NCBI RefSeq assembly: GCF_902713615.1 | Contig: NC_052158.1 | Span: 32,529,990 to 32,593,989, forward strand | Reading direction: 5' to 3' | Source: Scyliorhinus canicula | Taxonomy: Eukaryota | Length of the DNA: 64,000 nt | Shown here: one piece after another, positions 2,001-13,530 of the stretch | Numbering within the stretch: position 1 is the first letter of the stretch | How the letters are laid out: every line of letters begins with the position of its first letter | The notes under the pieces: generated by a model | Databases searched by the model: none | Seen by the model: the letters and a program-made list of their open reading frames with translations, nothing else | What the model was told of the DNA's origin: nothing | Made by a program: the position numbers and the translations under genes

Positions 2001-2206
2001 CCAGAGGGGGTGGGATGGAGAGGATTTCATCAACTTCGACGAGAGTAACAACATGTGGGTGACTCCTGTCCCCTGGGGAGAGGGCATCAAAAACAGGTGG
2101 AACCAGGACACTGCCGGCAAACAGCGATGGAAATATCACGTTCAGGGGGAGTGTATGGAGTGGCTGAAGAAATACCTGGAGTATGGACAGAGAGAACTGA
2201 GAGTCG
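2001..2206 (+). pseudogene. MHC class I alpha2 exon lacking approximately residues 91-114
   Basis: Translates QRGWDGEDFINFDESNNMWVTPVPWGEGIKNRWNQD...GECMEWLKKYLEYGQRELRV with donor GTCG|gtgagt. The nearest acceptor (tacag at 2000) is phase 2, and the GxHxxQxMYGCEL segment is absent. Confidence 0.9.
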
Positions 2207-4792
2207 GTGAGTGAGAGAGGAACTGAGAGTCGGTGAGTGAGGGGGGGGGGGGGACTGAGACTCTGTGAGTGAGGGGGGGGGACTGAGAGTCGGTGAGTGA
2301 GGGGGGGGACTGAGAGTCGGTGAGTGAGGCGGGGGACTGAGAGTCGGTGAGTGAGGGGGGGAACTGAGAGTCGATGAGTGAGGGGGAACTGAGAGTCGGT
2401 GAGTGAGGCGGGACAGAGTCGGTGAGTGAGGGAGGGACTCCCAGTCAGTGAGTGAGGGACTCCCAGTCAGTGAGTGAGGGGGGGGGACTGAGAGTCGGTG
2501 AGTGAGGAGGGGGACTGAGAGTCGGTGAGTGAGGGGGGGAACTGAGTCGGTGAGTGAGGGGGGGACTGAGAGTCGGTGAGTGAGGGGGGGACTGAGAGCC
2601 GGTGAGTGAGGGGAGGGACTGAGAGTCGGTGAGTGAGGGGGGTACTGAGAGTCGGTGAGTGAGGGGGGGACTGAGAGTCAGTGAGTGAGGGGGGGAATGA
2701 GAGTTGGTGAGTGAGGGGGGGACTGAGAGTCGGTCAGTGAGGGGGGGGACTGAGAGTCGGTGAATGAGGAGGGACTGAGTCGGTGAGTGAGGGGGGACTG
2801 AGAGTCGGTGAGTTAGGGGGGGGACTGAGAGTCGGTGAGTGAGGGGGGGGACACTGAGAGTCGGTGAGTGAGGGGGGGAGTGAGAGTCGGTGAGGGGGGA
2901 GTAAGAGTCGGTGAGTGAGGGGGGACTGAGAGTCGGTGAGTGAGGGGGGACAGAGAGTCGGTGAGTGAGGGGGGACAGAGAGTCGGTGAGTGAGGGGGGG
3001 AGTGAGAGTCGGTGAGTGAGGGGGGGACTGAGTGTCGGTGAGTGAGGGGGGGACTGAGAGTCAGTGAGAGGGGGGGGACTGAGAGTCGGTGATTGAGGAG
3101 GGGACTGAGAGTCGGTGAGTGAGGGGGGACTGAGAGTCAGTGAGAGGGGGGGGACTGAGAGTCGGTGATTGAGGAGGGGACTGAGAGTCGGTGAGTGAGG
3201 GGGGACTGAGAGTCGGTGAGTGAGGGAGGGACTGAGAGTCGGTGAGTGAGGGGGGGACAGTCGGTGACCGAGGGGGGGACTGAGTGTCGGTGAGTGGGGG
3301 GGGGTGAGAGTCGGTGAGTGAGGGGGGGGACTGAGATGCGGTGATTGAGGGGGGGGACTGAGAGTCGGTGAGTGAGGGGGGCCTGAGAGTCGGTGAGTGA
3401 GGTGGGGACGGGCTGCACGGTGGCCTAGTGGTTAGCACAGCTGCCTCACGGCGCTGAGGTCCCAGGTTCGATCCCGGCTCTGGGTCACTGTCCGTGTGGA
3501 GTTTGCACATTCTCCCCGTGTCTGTGTGGGTTTCGCCCCCACAACCCAAAAATGTGCAGAGTAGGTGGATTGGCCACACGAAAATTGTCCCTTAATTGGA
3601 AAAAATAATTGGATAAACTAAATTTATGAAAAAAAAAACAAAAAAAAAAAGTGAGGTGAGTGAGGGGGGACTGAGCGACGGTGAGTTGGGGAGGAACTGA
3701 GAGTCGGTGAGTGGGGGGGAGACAGAGTCGGTGAGGAGGGGGAGTGAGAATCGGTGAGTGAGGGGGGACTGAGAGTCGGTGAGTGAGGGGGGGACTGAAA
3801 GTCGGTGAGTGAGGGGGGGACTGAGAGTCGGTGAGTGAGGGGGGGGGACTGAGAGTCGGTGAGTGAGGGGGGGGACTGAGAGTCGGTGAATGAGGGGGGA
3901 CTGAAAGTCGGTGAGTGAGGGGGGGACTGAGAGTCGGTGAGTGAGGGGGGAGCAAGAGTCGGTGAATGAGGGGGGGACTGAAAGTCGGTGAGTGAGGGGG
4001 GACTGAGAGTCGGTGAGTGAGGGGGGACTGAGAGTCGGTGAGTGAGGGGGGGACTGAGAGTCGGTGAGTGAGGGGGGACTGAGAGTCGGTGAGTGAGGGG
4101 GGACTGAGAGTCGGTGAGTGAGGGGGGACTGAGAGTCGGTGAGTGAGGGGGGGAATGAGAGTCGGTGAATGAGGGGGGGGGGGACTGAGAGTCAGTGAAT
4201 GAGGGGGGGGGACTGAGAGTCGGAGTGAGGGGGGGGGACTGAGAGTCGGTGAGTGAGGGGGGGACTGAGAGTCGGTGAGTGAGGGGGGGACTGAGAGTCG
4301 GTGAGTGAGGGGGGGACTGAGAGTCGGTGAGTTTGGGGGGGGAATGAGAGTCGGTGACTGAAGGGGGGACTGAGAGTCGGTGAGTGAGGGGGGAGTAAGA
4401 ATCGGTGATTGAGGGGGGACTAAGTCGGTGAGTGAGGGAGGGACTGAGAGTCGGTGAGTGAGGGGGGACTGAGAGTCGGTGAGTGAGGGAGGGACTGAGA
4501 GTCGGAGTGAGGGGGGACTGAGAGTCGGTGAATGAGGAGGGACTGAGAGATGGTGAGTGAGGGGGGGACTGAGAGTCGGTGAGTGAGGGGGGACTGAGAG
4601 TCGGTGAGTGAGGGGGGTACTGAGAGTCGGTGAGTGAGGGGGGGGACTGAGAGTCGGTGAGTGAGGGGGGGACTGAGAGTCGGTGAGTGAGGGGGGAGAC
4701 TGAGAGTTGGTGAGGGGGTGGACTGAGAGTCGGTGAGTGAGGGGGGACTGGGAGTCGGTGAGTGAGGGTGGACACTGAGAGTCGGTGAAGGA
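2195..4792. repeat. G-rich minisatellite, ~27-30 bp unit (GGGACTGAGAGTCGGTGAGTGAGGGG), about 80 copies by length
   Basis: Directly visible; fills almost the whole alpha2-alpha3 intron. Confidence 0.97.
3410..3650 (+). mobile_element. tRNA-derived SINE (HE1-related) with A-rich tail, inserted in the minisatellite
   Basis: GGGCTGCACGGTGGCCTAGTGGTTAG (A box) ... GGTTCGATCCC (B box), conserved SINE body and poly(A) tail. Confidence 0.9.
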
Positions 4793-4855
4793 GGTGATGT
4801 CTTTAATTCTCTATCTCAGGTTTCCTGTACTGATTCCTCTTTCTTTCTCTCTCAG

Positions 4856-5120
4856 TTGCCCCCATCGTGTCCTTTACCCCGTCTGGGTGATTCTAACCGG
4901 CTGCCCTGTGTCGTCACCGCGTTTTACCCTCAAGCCATCGAGGTGAATCTGTGGAGAGATGGAGTGGTGATTGATGAGACCCTGTCCAGTGGGATCTTAC
5001 CCAATCACGACAGGACCTTCCAGATCCGGAAATGGGTGGAGTTTGATCCGGAGGACCAGGCTGAGTATTCCTGTCGGGTGGAACACAGCGGACTGAATGA
5101 GACACTGGTGGTGATTTATG
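4856..5120 (+). pseudogene. MHC class I alpha3 (C1-Ig) exon with +1 frameshift
   Basis: Boundaries ctctcag|TTGCC and TATG|gtaaga. The length is 265 nt, one more than a symmetric phase-1 exon. VAPIVSFT is joined to RLGDSNRLPCVVTAFYP...W...YSCRVEHSGL by an extra C in CCCC at 4877-4880, and the spliced frame stops at 4888-4890. Confidence 0.93.
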
Positions 5121-5349
5121 GTAAGACTATGTCTCACTCTTGGAGAGACAGCCTCAGATTAGGATCATAGGAGGGATGATCAGTACTGAGTGTCACTCCA
5201 GGATGGGCTGAGGCCCAGGATGCAGAGGGATTGAAGGACATAATTTGTAAAAATGTGTCACAGTCCAGATGACAGCAATAACAGCGGACATAAATTGTAT
5301 GTCTTGGAATTTTCGGCAATGTAGGCCAGTGTAAGTACTCTGGAATGCA

Positions 5350-6060
5350 GATTATCAGACCCTGGGCAGTTAGCAGCCTTCAATCCCATCAATTTCCACA
5401 TTACCATTTCCCCTACGAATGCTGATTTCCTTCAGTTCCTCCTTCACTATACCCTTTGTTCCCCAACTTTTCTGGTAAATTACTTGTGTCCTTCTTTATG
5501 ATGGCTGAACCCAAATATGTATGTCGTTGGTCAGCCATTTATTTGTTCTCCATTATAAATTGTTCTGTTTTTGACTCTGTGAACCTACATTTGCCTTCAC
5601 CAATTTTATTTTCTTTGCATAACAGATTTATGATCCCCATAAGCTTACTCTTAGTTCCCTAGTTGGTTCTTCAATGTATTGGTCCAGAAGACTATCCTGT
5701 AGGTATCCCTCCTCTATAGTATTGTTACTAATTGGATTTGCCCAAACATTATGTAGATTAAAGTCAACTATAATTATCAATGTTAATTTATCACATGCTT
5801 CACTAAATTTCTGTTTAATGCCATTCCCAACATCACCACTTCAATTTGGGGATCTATATACAACCTCCAGAAATGTTTTTTCCCCTTGGTGTTTCTCAGC
5901 TCTACCCATACAGATTCCACATTGTTGGAGCTAATACCCTTCCTCACTATTGCTTTAATTTCCTCTTTGGTCGGTTGGAGTGTCTCTTTCAGTTCCTCTC
6001 GTGTTATGAGTCTGTTGTTTGTGTAGAAGTCACTAACTGTCAGTGGCCCCCTGTCCTGTC
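5350..6060 (-). mobile_element. CR1 LINE fragments (endonuclease region)
   Basis: Minus-strand NVESVWVELRNTKGK, a CR1 endonuclease motif, decayed. Confidence 0.7.
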
Positions 6061-6655: not shown

Positions 6656-6737
6656 AATGCTGCCAGACTTGCTGAGATTTTCCAGCATTTTCCCTTTAGT
6701 TTCAGATTCCAGCATCCGCAGTAATTTGCTTTTCAAC

Positions 6738-7150: not shown

Positions 7151-8930
7151 GTTGCCTGCACCATTGTGTCGACACCCTCGAAGATGCTCCTCAGTGACTT
7201 GGACACATTCCCCAGTGACTGGGCCATGCTCTGCAGTGCCTCGGGAATGCCCACCAGCGACTGAGGCAAGCTCTTCAGGGGATCAGCCATTCCCACCTGA
7301 GAGCGGGATATGTCCCGCACAACCTCATCAAGGTAAGCCTGGTATTGGGGAACATCCTTCAGCGAGGCAGACATACTGTCACGACCTCAGCCGTGGGCGT
7401 CACCGACTGCGCGATGCCTTGGACACCTTCACTAATGGTGCCGACGTCATGCACCAGGCTCTCCACTGCGGTCGCCACCCTAGCAGTGTTGGCCTCAGTG
7501 CCACTCATTGCCACTGACATCCCCTGCGCCCGTAGCCTCTGGGACTCCTCTAATCAGCTATGGATCTGCTGGAGTGATGCTGACATCTCCCTCTGAATGT
7601 CCCGGCCATTCCCTAACGTCTCCATAAGCTCTGGGTAACCCTGTTCCTGAGCCTCTGGAACAGGGTTACCCAGAGACCCAACTGGGTCTCGGGATCCAGC
7701 AGCCCTCCGACTGCTGTCTTGCCTGGGGGGGGGGGGGGGGGTATAATGCCTCCACCAGATGTGCATGATCAGAAGTGTGGTGCTCACCAGATTGTGCCCC
7801 AGAAGCCTGACCACTAAATTTTCCCACCGAGGGTGTGTATCTGTGCTAGTGGAGGGTAAGGATGACAGCTGCAGCTGTGCCACGACTATAATGGTTGCAT
7901 CCTCGGAGCTCTCCTCCGAGGTGTTCTCCTCAGGGTCAGGAGAGGGGGCCGCCGTGGAATAGGCCGGCTGGAGGACCTGCGGGGGGGAACGGGCATATGG
8001 TCAGTGGGAGGGATGGGTCAGTCAGTAAGGCATTGACACCTCACGTTTGACAGGACCCCCGGGTGGAGCCCAGTGGTTCCTCACATTTGCGGCTGCCGCC
8101 AGCCTCCGCATGGGTGACTGCCCTGTCCTCGGCCAACCCCAGTCTGGGCCTTCTCCTGCCGATTATGGGAGAGCTTTTCCTGACAAGACACAGTGAGGGC
8201 ATCGTTAGCCAGGTGTGTGGTTCACGGTTGTGGGGCGGGATGGTGGTGAAGGGTGTTGGGTGGAGGAGGATTGAAATAGTGGGTGGAGGGAGGGCTGTAG
8301 TGGGAGGGGAATGGAGGGTTGGGGGTCACCTGGGGGGAGCCTCCCTAGAGGTGTGTGGGGGGGGGGGTTGGTGGAATGTTGCGTCTAGTCACCCATGCTG
8401 CTCGGTGCAGGTCATTGGCCTTGTTCCCGCACTGGAGGCCAGTCCTCCTGGTCAAACTCCCCGAGCTGACAGCTGCCACCACGTCATCCCAGGCAGCATT
8501 GGCTGCCTTGTGGCTCATCGCTCGGGACCCTCGGGGGAACAGTTCATCCCTCCTCAACTCCACCATGTCCAGGTGACTCCACAGGTCAGCATCCCCGAAT
8601 TATGGGATGGTCTCCTGGGCTCCATTGTTGCGATGTGGCTGGGGTTGGCTGAGCAAGAGCAGCTTCTCTCTCTCTAACAGAGCCATTCTCCCCCTTCCCC
8701 CTCGCATTCGCCCCCTTCCCCCTCGCATTCGCCCCCATCCCCCTCACATTCGCTCCCATCCCCCTCGCATTCGCCCCTTCCCCCTCACATTCGCCCCCAT
8801 CCCCCTCATATTCGCTCCCACCCCCCTCGCATTCACCCCATCCCCCTCGCATTCGCCCCCTTCCCCTCGCATTCGCCCCCATCCCCCTCGCATTCGCCCC
8901 CTTCCCCTCGCATTCACCCCATCCCCCTCG
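7151..8930 (-). mobile_element. Harbinger-type transposon remnant with Myb/SANT-like DNA-binding gene; ends in a ~14-15 bp CCCCTCGCATTCGCC repeat at the gap
   Basis: ORF 8345-8566 reads VELRRDELFP...AAWDDVVAAVSSGSLTRRTGLQC..K.NDL (Myb/SANT-like domain), and downstream coiled-coil-like ORF 7135-7374 follows it. Confidence 0.7.
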
Positions 8931-9430
8931 NNNNNNNNNNNNNNNNNNNNNNNNNNNNNNNNNNNNNNNNNNNNNNNNNNNNNNNNNNNNNNNNNNNNNN
9001 NNNNNNNNNNNNNNNNNNNNNNNNNNNNNNNNNNNNNNNNNNNNNNNNNNNNNNNNNNNNNNNNNNNNNNNNNNNNNNNNNNNNNNNNNNNNNNNNNNNN
9101 NNNNNNNNNNNNNNNNNNNNNNNNNNNNNNNNNNNNNNNNNNNNNNNNNNNNNNNNNNNNNNNNNNNNNNNNNNNNNNNNNNNNNNNNNNNNNNNNNNNN
9201 NNNNNNNNNNNNNNNNNNNNNNNNNNNNNNNNNNNNNNNNNNNNNNNNNNNNNNNNNNNNNNNNNNNNNNNNNNNNNNNNNNNNNNNNNNNNNNNNNNNN
9301 NNNNNNNNNNNNNNNNNNNNNNNNNNNNNNNNNNNNNNNNNNNNNNNNNNNNNNNNNNNNNNNNNNNNNNNNNNNNNNNNNNNNNNNNNNNNNNNNNNNN
9401 NNNNNNNNNNNNNNNNNNNNNNNNNNNNNN
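8931..9430. other. Assembly gap (500 N)
   Basis: Run of N. Confidence 1.
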
Positions 9431-9539
9431 CTGTTAGAGGGGCTCAGTGTGAGGGGGGGCATGGCCCTTTCACTCAGGGTTCCAGCCTCTGATTTTATGT
9501 CAGTCTCTCGTCACTCACTGAACATTCCTTATTTTACAG

Positions 9540-9572
9540 GGAGAGGGAACAGCGGCTACAATCCTACAAAGC
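9540..9572 (+). CDS. MHC class I cytoplasmic exon 1 (33 nt, phase 1-1): (x)RGNSGYNPTK
   Basis: ttttacag|GGAGAGGG...AAAGC|gtaagc. The GYNP motif resembles shark class I tails. Confidence 0.8.
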
Positions 9573-12009: not shown

Positions 12010-13530
12010 GGAGTTTTGCTGGTGTTTGAGGATCTGATGGGTTTTTCCGGTGTTTGGCGGTCTGATGGGTATTGCTGGTGTTTGGGGATGATGGGTTTTG
12101 CTGGTGTTTGGGGATGATGGGTTTTGCTGGTGTTTGGGGATGATGGGTTTTGCTGGTGTTTGGGGATGATGGGTTTTGCTGGTGTTTGGGGATGATGGGT
12201 TTTGCTGGTGTTTGGGGATGATGGGTTTTGCTGGTGTTTGGGGATGATGGGTTTTGCTGGTATTTGGGGATGATGGGTTTTGCTGGTGTTTGGGGGTCTG
12301 ATGGGTTTTGCTGGTGTTTAGCGGTTCTGATGGGTTTTGCTGGTATTTGGGGGTCTGATGGGTTTTGCTGGTGTTTGGGGATGATGGGTTTTGCTGGTGT
12401 TTGGGGGTCTGATGGGTTTTGCTCGTGTTTGGGGATGATGGATTTTGCTGGTGTTTGGGGGTCTGATGGGTTTTGCTGGTATTTGGGGATGATGGGTTTT
12501 GCTGGTGTTTGGGGGTCTGATGGGTTTTGCTGGTGTTTAGCGGTTCTGATGGGTTTTGCTGGTATTTGGGGGTCTGATGGGTTTTGCTGGTGTTTGGGGA
12601 TGATGGGTTTTGCTGGTGTTTGGGGGTCTGATGGGTTTTGCTCGTGTTTGGGGATGATGGGTTTTGCTGGAGTTTGGGGATGATGGGTTTTGCTGATGTT
12701 TGGGGGTCTGATGGGTTTTGCTGGTGTTTAGCAGTTCTGATGGGTTTTGCTGGTATTTGGGGGTCTGATGGGTTTTGCTGGTGTTTGGGGATGATGGGTT
12801 TTGCTGGTGTTTGGGGATGATGGGTTTTGCTGGAGTTTGGGGATGATGGGTTTTGCTGGTGTTTGGGGATGATGAGTTTTGCTGGTATTTGGGGCTCTGA
12901 TGGGTTTTGCTGGTGTTTGGGGATGATGGGTTTTGCTGGTGTTTGGGGATGATGGGTTTTGCTGGTGTTTGGGGATGATGGGTTTTGCTGGTATTTGGGG
13001 CTCTGATGGGTTTTGCTGGTGTTTGGGGATGATGGGTTTTGCTGGTGTTTGGGGGTCTGATGGGTTTTGCTGGTGTTTGGGGGTCTGATGGGTTTTGCTG
13101 GTGTTTGGGGATGATGGGTTTTGCTGGTATTTGGGGCTCTGATGGGTTTTGCTGGTGTTTGGGGATGATGGGTTTTGCTGGTGTTTGGGGGTCTGATGGG
13201 TTTTGCTGGTGTTTGGGAATGATGGGTTTTGCTGGTGTTTGGGGGTCTGATGGGTTTTGCTGGTGTTTGGGGGTCTGATGGGTTTTGCTGGTGTTTGGGG
13301 GTCTGATGGGTTTTGCTGGTGTTTGGGGGTCTGATGGGTTTTGCTGGTGTTTGGGGATGATGGGTTTTGCTGGTGTTTGGGGGTCTGATGGGTTTTGCTG
13401 GTGTTTGGGGATGATGGGTTTTGCTGGTGTTTGGGGATGATGGGTTTTGCTGGTGTTTGGTGATGATGGGTTTTGCTGGTGTTTGGGGGTCTGATGGGTT
13501 TTGCTGGTGTTTGGGGGTCTGATGGGATTT
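12010..13530. repeat. Minisatellite, ~27-28 bp unit (GGGTTTTGCTGGTGTTTGGGGATGAT / ...GGGGTCTGAT)
   Basis: Directly visible; degenerate copies also at ~15890-15975. Confidence 0.97.

Follow-up and report, generated by a model that had tools for sequence, protein, structure and literature searches.

Minisatellites in which the first monomer lies across an exon-intron boundary have been described in F7, 6-16/IFI6, CBS, LMNB2 and PDGF (Borensztajn et al. 2006, PMC1557585). In F7 the downstream pseudo-donors are functional and identical to the authentic site and never compete with the most upstream one, a 5'-to-3' scanning-type preference (PMC1557585). The two nearest pseudo-sites are used as well in IFI6 and CBS, and in LMNB2 most of the intron is covered by the repeat (PMC1557585). 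[quoted passage not shown] The DNA examined was a window of 64,000 nucleotides (nt) on the + strand of NC_052158.1 (assembly GCF_902713615.1, positions 32,529,990-32,593,989), and coordinates below are counted from its first letter. No account of repeats in shark class I introns was found in the literature searched. We consider it likely that the array is a tolerated minisatellite whose host gene is a transcribed pseudogene, and that splicing uses its first donor and leaves the other ~60 perfect ones silent.

The array is a 26-base pair (bp) minisatellite at 2195-4795 on the + strand. Parsing with a 17-nt anchor gave 92 units in the assembled sequence, and Tandem Repeats Finder returned a single array at 2196-4788 (80% matches), whose length corresponds to 100.6 copies of a 26-bp period. 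Allowing no more than 2 mismatches, a 20-nt core was matched at 76 places, always on the + strand and always within 2199-4769, against a chance expectation of 0. The unit is composed of the exon end, a donor and a G-run, the G-runs being mostly 6-8 G. The exact 9-mer TCG/GTGAGT (the slash marking the splice site) was present in 61 copies and the GTGAGT hexamer in 70, and the array contained 99 runs of at least 3 G, 44 of which were at least 7 G long. Unit 1 is the exon-intron junction itself. The last 11-12 nt of the alpha2 exon and the first 9 nt of the intron (GTGAGTGAG) match the array unit, and unit 1 differs from the later units solely by its missing G-run. The long G-run closest to the first donor has 13 G and lies about 25 nt downstream. 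Reading past the first donor in the alpha2-domain frame gives GGT GAG TGA, an in-frame stop.

Intron 3 spans 2207-4855 (2,649 nt), and the array together with a short interspersed element (SINE) inserted in it accounts for 98% of this length. Non-repeat sequence was confined to the last 60 nt, where the AG, a pyrimidine tract and a CTGAT resembling a branch point are located. The SINE belongs to an old family, and further copies in the window were 70-80% identical to it by blastn. ARAGORN detected no intact transfer RNA (tRNA) in the SINE, and no target-site duplication was callable because the repeat unit stands on both flanks. Long antisense open reading frames (ORFs) that cross the array, such as that at 3624-4775 (383 amino acids), were dismissed as repeat artefacts. 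The exact two-unit pattern had 0 matches in metagenome contigs. An earlier first-pass annotation of this DNA, made from the letters alone, had reported that the exon end is the first unit of the array, that nearly every unit has a consensus donor with a G-run behind it and that a TGA follows the donor in frame. These observations were borne out, that on the donors for most of the units. It had also described the intron as about 80 tandem donor copies. The array itself stood, the count proved slightly low, and the SINE and the broken state of the gene had been missed.

The host of the array is an MHC class I gene encoded by the + strand. The Pfam MHC_I domain (PF00129) matched in two parts, with model positions 1-88 on 1337-1603 and 116-179 on 2002-2212, and the C1-set domain (PF07654) matched on 4880-5119. 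The MHC_I fold of alpha1/alpha2 and the C1-set alpha3 domain are carried by separate phase-1 exons, whose order and phases match those of relatives. Exons were searched singly and the reading frame was derived exon by exon, not from one joined model. Reads or contigs from four sequencing runs (X12, X13, X16 and X22) were placed on positions 1300-2480 of the window, so the intron was covered from 2207 to 2480 and the acceptor side lay outside. X12 consists of contigs with a total of 219 million letters, and the label of its record only guesses that it is RNA. We infer that X12 is RNA because its contig is spliced and because, in a multi-gigabase genome, 219 million letters are too few to cover single-copy DNA to a depth of 18. 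X22 is a raw-read oligo-dT RNA run and X13 is a run from a second, coded species. The DNA runs were of low coverage, with 0.21-0.29 of words present. The features of the gene copy and of the array are as follows.

1344-1604, + strand: alpha1 exon, phase 1 at both ends (Pfam MHC_I, E 9e-18; 70% identity to Mustelus asterias P0003).

1605-2000, + strand: intron 2 as removed in RNA, GT..AG, 396 nt (joint in an X12 contig).

2001-2206, + strand: alpha2 exon as spliced, truncated to 206 nt (X12 contig; Pfam model positions 116-179 only).

2207-2212, + strand: first GTGAGT of the series, the authentic 5' splice site and used in RNA (loose ends of X12 contigs).

2195-3407, + strand: left half of the minisatellite, 47 units, the first being the exon end and donor.

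About 3408-3652, + strand: tRNA-derived SINE of 245 bp with an A-rich tail, interrupting one unit (sequence, and blastn against the window).

3653-4795, + strand: right half of the minisatellite, 44 units.

4796-4855, + strand: non-repeat 3' end of intron 3, its AG acceptor used according to the X12 loose end.

4856-5120, + strand: alpha3 exon, C1-set immunoglobulin domain (Pfam E 1e-14; 79% identity to P0003 by tblastn, in a frame that is shifted against the start of the exon).

9539-9572, + strand: putative cytoplasmic-tail exon, GRGNSGYNPTK, with AG and GT flanks (tblastn to P0003 residues 323-333, 82%, E 0.41).

Donor use was read from the contigs of the RNA runs. A 495-nt X12 contig with a k-mer depth of 18 matched 1341-1602 and then 1999-2206 with 0 differences. 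The contig skips 1605-2000 as a GT..AG intron (joint 1602>1999, cut +2). Two X12 contigs extended beyond 2206 as loose ends, and the 24-letter consensus of these ends was identical to 4856-4879. In the RNA-derived contigs of X12 the first donor (2206/2207) is joined to the alpha3 acceptor at 4856. Summed contig depth in X12 was 4,500-5,600 on 2140-2219, mostly from relatives sharing the exon end, and was 0 on 2220-2480. No X12 contig ran from the exon end into unit 2. The alpha1 exon was covered by RNA-derived contigs in both X12 and X16, and X16 contained an exact alpha1 contig together with a few array contigs that had no link to an exon. X22 had almost no exon reads and was hence uninformative on donor use. 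At contig resolution and in one run, the RNA sampled used the first donor only and the array was removed as an intron.

This gene copy has decayed. RNA enters alpha2 at a cryptic acceptor (first exon base 2001) that is one base off the alpha2-domain frame, and the frame carried over from alpha1 meets a TGA at 2060-2062. A degenerate remnant of the 5' third of alpha2 was detected at about 1896-2000, with an internal duplication of about 47 bp and stops, and it falls within the intron 2 that is removed from the RNA. The window contained no in-frame counterpart to P0003 residues ~109-129, the normal 5' third of alpha2 with the first disulfide cysteine. In alpha3 an extra C in the C-run at 4877-4880 causes a +1 frameshift, and entry in phase 1 leads to a TGA at 4888-4890. 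Relatives (Mustelus, Heterodontus and Triakis) have SFTRLGDSN at this place, and in the window it is split over two frames as SFTP and RLGDSN. No open frame runs through alpha1, alpha2 and alpha3. The gene copy is a transcribed and spliced pseudogene that is unable to encode a class I chain. Neither similarity nor hydrophobicity revealed a transmembrane exon between 5121 and 8930, and this exon may lie in the assembly gap at 8931-9430. A 21-bp C-rich array of 12 copies (8684-8930) abuts this gap, which may exist because of the adjoining repeat. No leader exon of the class I gene and no second class I gene were found in the 64-kb window. As an unannotated transcribed class I pseudogene, this copy bears on counts of functional MHC genes in the catshark.

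Variation among the repeat units was counted per position over 86 ungapped units. About 5% of the core bases deviated from the consensus, and the CpG was lost by transition in 9 of the 86 units. Position +5 of the donor was the most variable of all, being changed in 13 of 86, and positions +1 to +6 taken together showed no depletion of changes (p 0.2). Multi-unit duplications were evident inside the array, for example the three-unit blocks 3056-3131 and 3132-3207, and variant 17-mers were mostly private to one side of the SINE. Local multi-unit duplications and side-private variants fit slippage or unequal exchange. This pattern suggests local duplication and slow decay without donor-specific protection. 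The array probably arose from a 26-bp segment that combined the last 11-12 bases of alpha2 with the 5' splice site and a brief G-rich sequence and was duplicated in tandem, most likely through replication slippage or unequal exchange. Expansion would have continued until intron 3 of this shark nonclassical class I gene was filled. The spliceosome would then take the exon-proximal first donor and excise the whole array as an intron, and the ~60 other perfect donors would be silent pseudo-sites, as in human F7.

The relatives of the gene were assessed by protein similarity. In an exhaustive protein search the best relatives of alpha1 were a multigene family of class I-like proteins of Mustelus asterias (70% identity), and identity was 65% to a Heterodontus protein and 52% to classical Triakis class I. 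When the alpha3 ORF was the query of a word-based protein search, a Chiloscyllium fragment was the single match. A multicopy UBA cluster has been mapped in elasmobranch MHCs (PMC10751288), and the gene may be a putative UBA-type nonclassical class I gene compatible with that cluster. None of the closest relatives carried a UBA name, all having generic RefSeq names only. In the second species (X13) short contigs of the 26-bp unit, placed on 2180-2460, had a summed depth near 57,000 as compared to 10-25 on alpha1. The unit family is not private to the catshark genome, and its depth in X13 is far above what the array of one gene would give.

The first-pass annotation had proposed that array length could serve as a rheostat of expression or as a splice decoy that can be tuned, or else as a recombination hotspot in a class I family. 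In the decoy or rheostat proposal the downstream donors would capture U1, a fraction of the transcripts would include the TGA and be degraded, and array length would tune the amount of mRNA. The 61 exact copies of the authentic 9-mer, each with a G-run of mostly 6-8 G, speak for this proposal, as does the stop that follows the donor in the alpha2-domain frame. G-runs 3' of donors are splicing enhancers that depend on heterogeneous nuclear ribonucleoproteins (hnRNP) F/H (PMC12062376). The same annotation had assigned the G-runs to this hnRNP F/H enhancer class, which agrees with the published motif as a class of sequence only (PMC12062376). The only spliced RNA recovered, however, joined the first donor to alpha3, and no X12 contig entered unit 2, with a depth of 0 beyond the exon end as compared to thousands on it. 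The junction check that the annotation had suggested, from each donor to 4856, returned only the first donor in the X12 contigs of this one run, with rare events beyond its resolution. Products of decoy splicing would be rare targets of nonsense-mediated decay, so the RNA test had low power. Identical pseudo-sites in F7 do not compete with the first donor and stay silent (PMC1557585), which also speaks against such a decoy. Furthermore, the shark copy is out of frame upstream of the array, so there is nothing here for a decoy or rheostat to tune. A decoy or rheostat found no support here, and we regard it as unlikely. An improbable alternative is a structural or recombinational element, with R-loops or long-loop G-quadruplexes slowing transcription, or with the array serving as a hotspot of unequal exchange or gene conversion among class I paralogues. 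Over 2001-4000 the coding strand was rich in G (GC skew +0.64), making R-loops conceivable, and the multi-unit duplications within the array indicate ongoing exchange. G-quadruplex formation had likewise been suggested in the first-pass annotation. No canonical motif (four tracts of at least 3 G, loops of 1-7 or 1-12 nt) occurred in the array. Four-tract motifs without overlap, 23 in number, appeared only when loops as long as 21 nt were admitted. Each of the 44 runs with 7 or more G might contribute two tracts, which from the sequence would allow forms with a long central loop.

It is also conceivable, and quite improbable in our view, that the array is a selected loading platform for U1 and hnRNP H that shields a long G-rich intron against cryptic splicing or against being cleaved and polyadenylated too early, or that strengthens the first donor. 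The near invariance of donor positions +1 to +4 in the 86 units and the abundance of the unit family in the second species fit such a platform. Against it, the position that varies most is +5, which after the GT matters most for pairing with U1. Positions +1 to +6 together were not depleted of changes, and the test was post hoc. A further proposal, which draws on the abundance of the unit in the second species and on its almost invariant GT cores, is that the array is a maintained feature of shark UBA-type class I genes, either as a platform for the U1 small nuclear ribonucleoprotein and hnRNP H or as a length-dependent brake, and that the copy in the window is a decaying relic; this too we hold to be improbable. 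That the array or its length is a mis-assembled repeat is very unlikely. Long minisatellites are difficult to assemble and an N gap lies 4 kb downstream. However, both flanks were confirmed by RNA as splice partners, the array has ordered private variants and an inserted SINE, unlike collapsed or spurious repeats, and the unit was contained in independent runs, one of them from another species.

Several observations weigh against a tolerated array with silent donors in a pseudogene. RNA support for this copy is thin, comprising two contigs from one run, and contigs lose rare variants. X22, the sole raw-read RNA run placed, was nearly empty on the exons. The alpha3 frameshift lies in a homopolymer and is known from the assembly alone, so an assembly error is possible. 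The GTGA at donor +1 to +4 was near-invariant, with 2 substitution events as compared to 53 at the remaining 13 positions of the core (p 6e-5, post hoc), and pure neutrality does not predict this. For a near-invariant GTGA beside a variable +5 we have no consistent account by selection. The abundance of the 26-bp unit in the second species could also mean constraint. With these points taken into account, we still favor tolerance with use of the first donor, and the array is described here as tolerated rather than as a shown regulator.

Other repeats and mobile elements were observed in the window. Intron 1 contains a minisatellite at 842-1343 with a 42-44 bp unit in about 11 copies that reaches the alpha1 acceptor. 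Its final unit and the pyrimidine tract preceding the AG (1342-1343) overlap, and its internal units are without an AG. This array mirrors the donor array at the opposite type of splice site. Upstream of it an ORF at 22-333 has a reverse-transcriptase-like C-terminal stretch and by eye appears to be a fragment of a long interspersed element. In intron 2, at about 1700-1850, a transposon-like element had a summed contig depth of 10^4 to 10^6 in all four runs, and one more partial copy with 90% identity was found at 6657-6733. Downstream of the putative cytoplasmic exon, at 12013-13516, lies a second period-26 array (54 in the higher order), in which about 56 copies show 89-91% matches. This array is G/T-rich, with a unit not related to that of the donor array.

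Compared to the described exon-boundary minisatellites, the shark array is closest to intron 7 of human F7, a 37-bp repeat in 5-9 copies that likewise has a boundary-spanning first monomer and in which only the most upstream donor is used (PMC1557585). The shark array has a first monomer spanning the junction, an identical donor repeated downstream and mRNA made from the most upstream donor, the last at contig level and in one run. The two differ in size and setting. The shark array has ten times the copies (92 as compared to 5-9) and the strong consensus donor GTGAGT where F7 has GTGGGT, its units each contain a G-run, it fills nearly the whole intron, and its host gene copy is a pseudogene. 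Human IFI6 (6-16) intron 2 and CBS intron 13 are likewise exon-boundary minisatellites, with 15-25 pseudo-donors, and pseudo-donor use of the kind found there was not seen in the shark copy, at low detection power. The intron repeat of human LMNB2 has a 100-bp unit in 10-15 copies and that of PDGF intron 4 an 81-bp unit in 16-18 copies. Both thus have longer units in fewer copies, and they are unrelated in sequence and mammalian. If the array is indeed tolerated and its downstream donors silent, it would be a very large natural example of this kind, with 92 units and ~60 perfect pseudo-donors in an intron of which repeat and SINE make up 98%. It would then illustrate in a cartilaginous fish, far beyond the mammals, the rule that among identical 5' splice sites the one furthest upstream is used.

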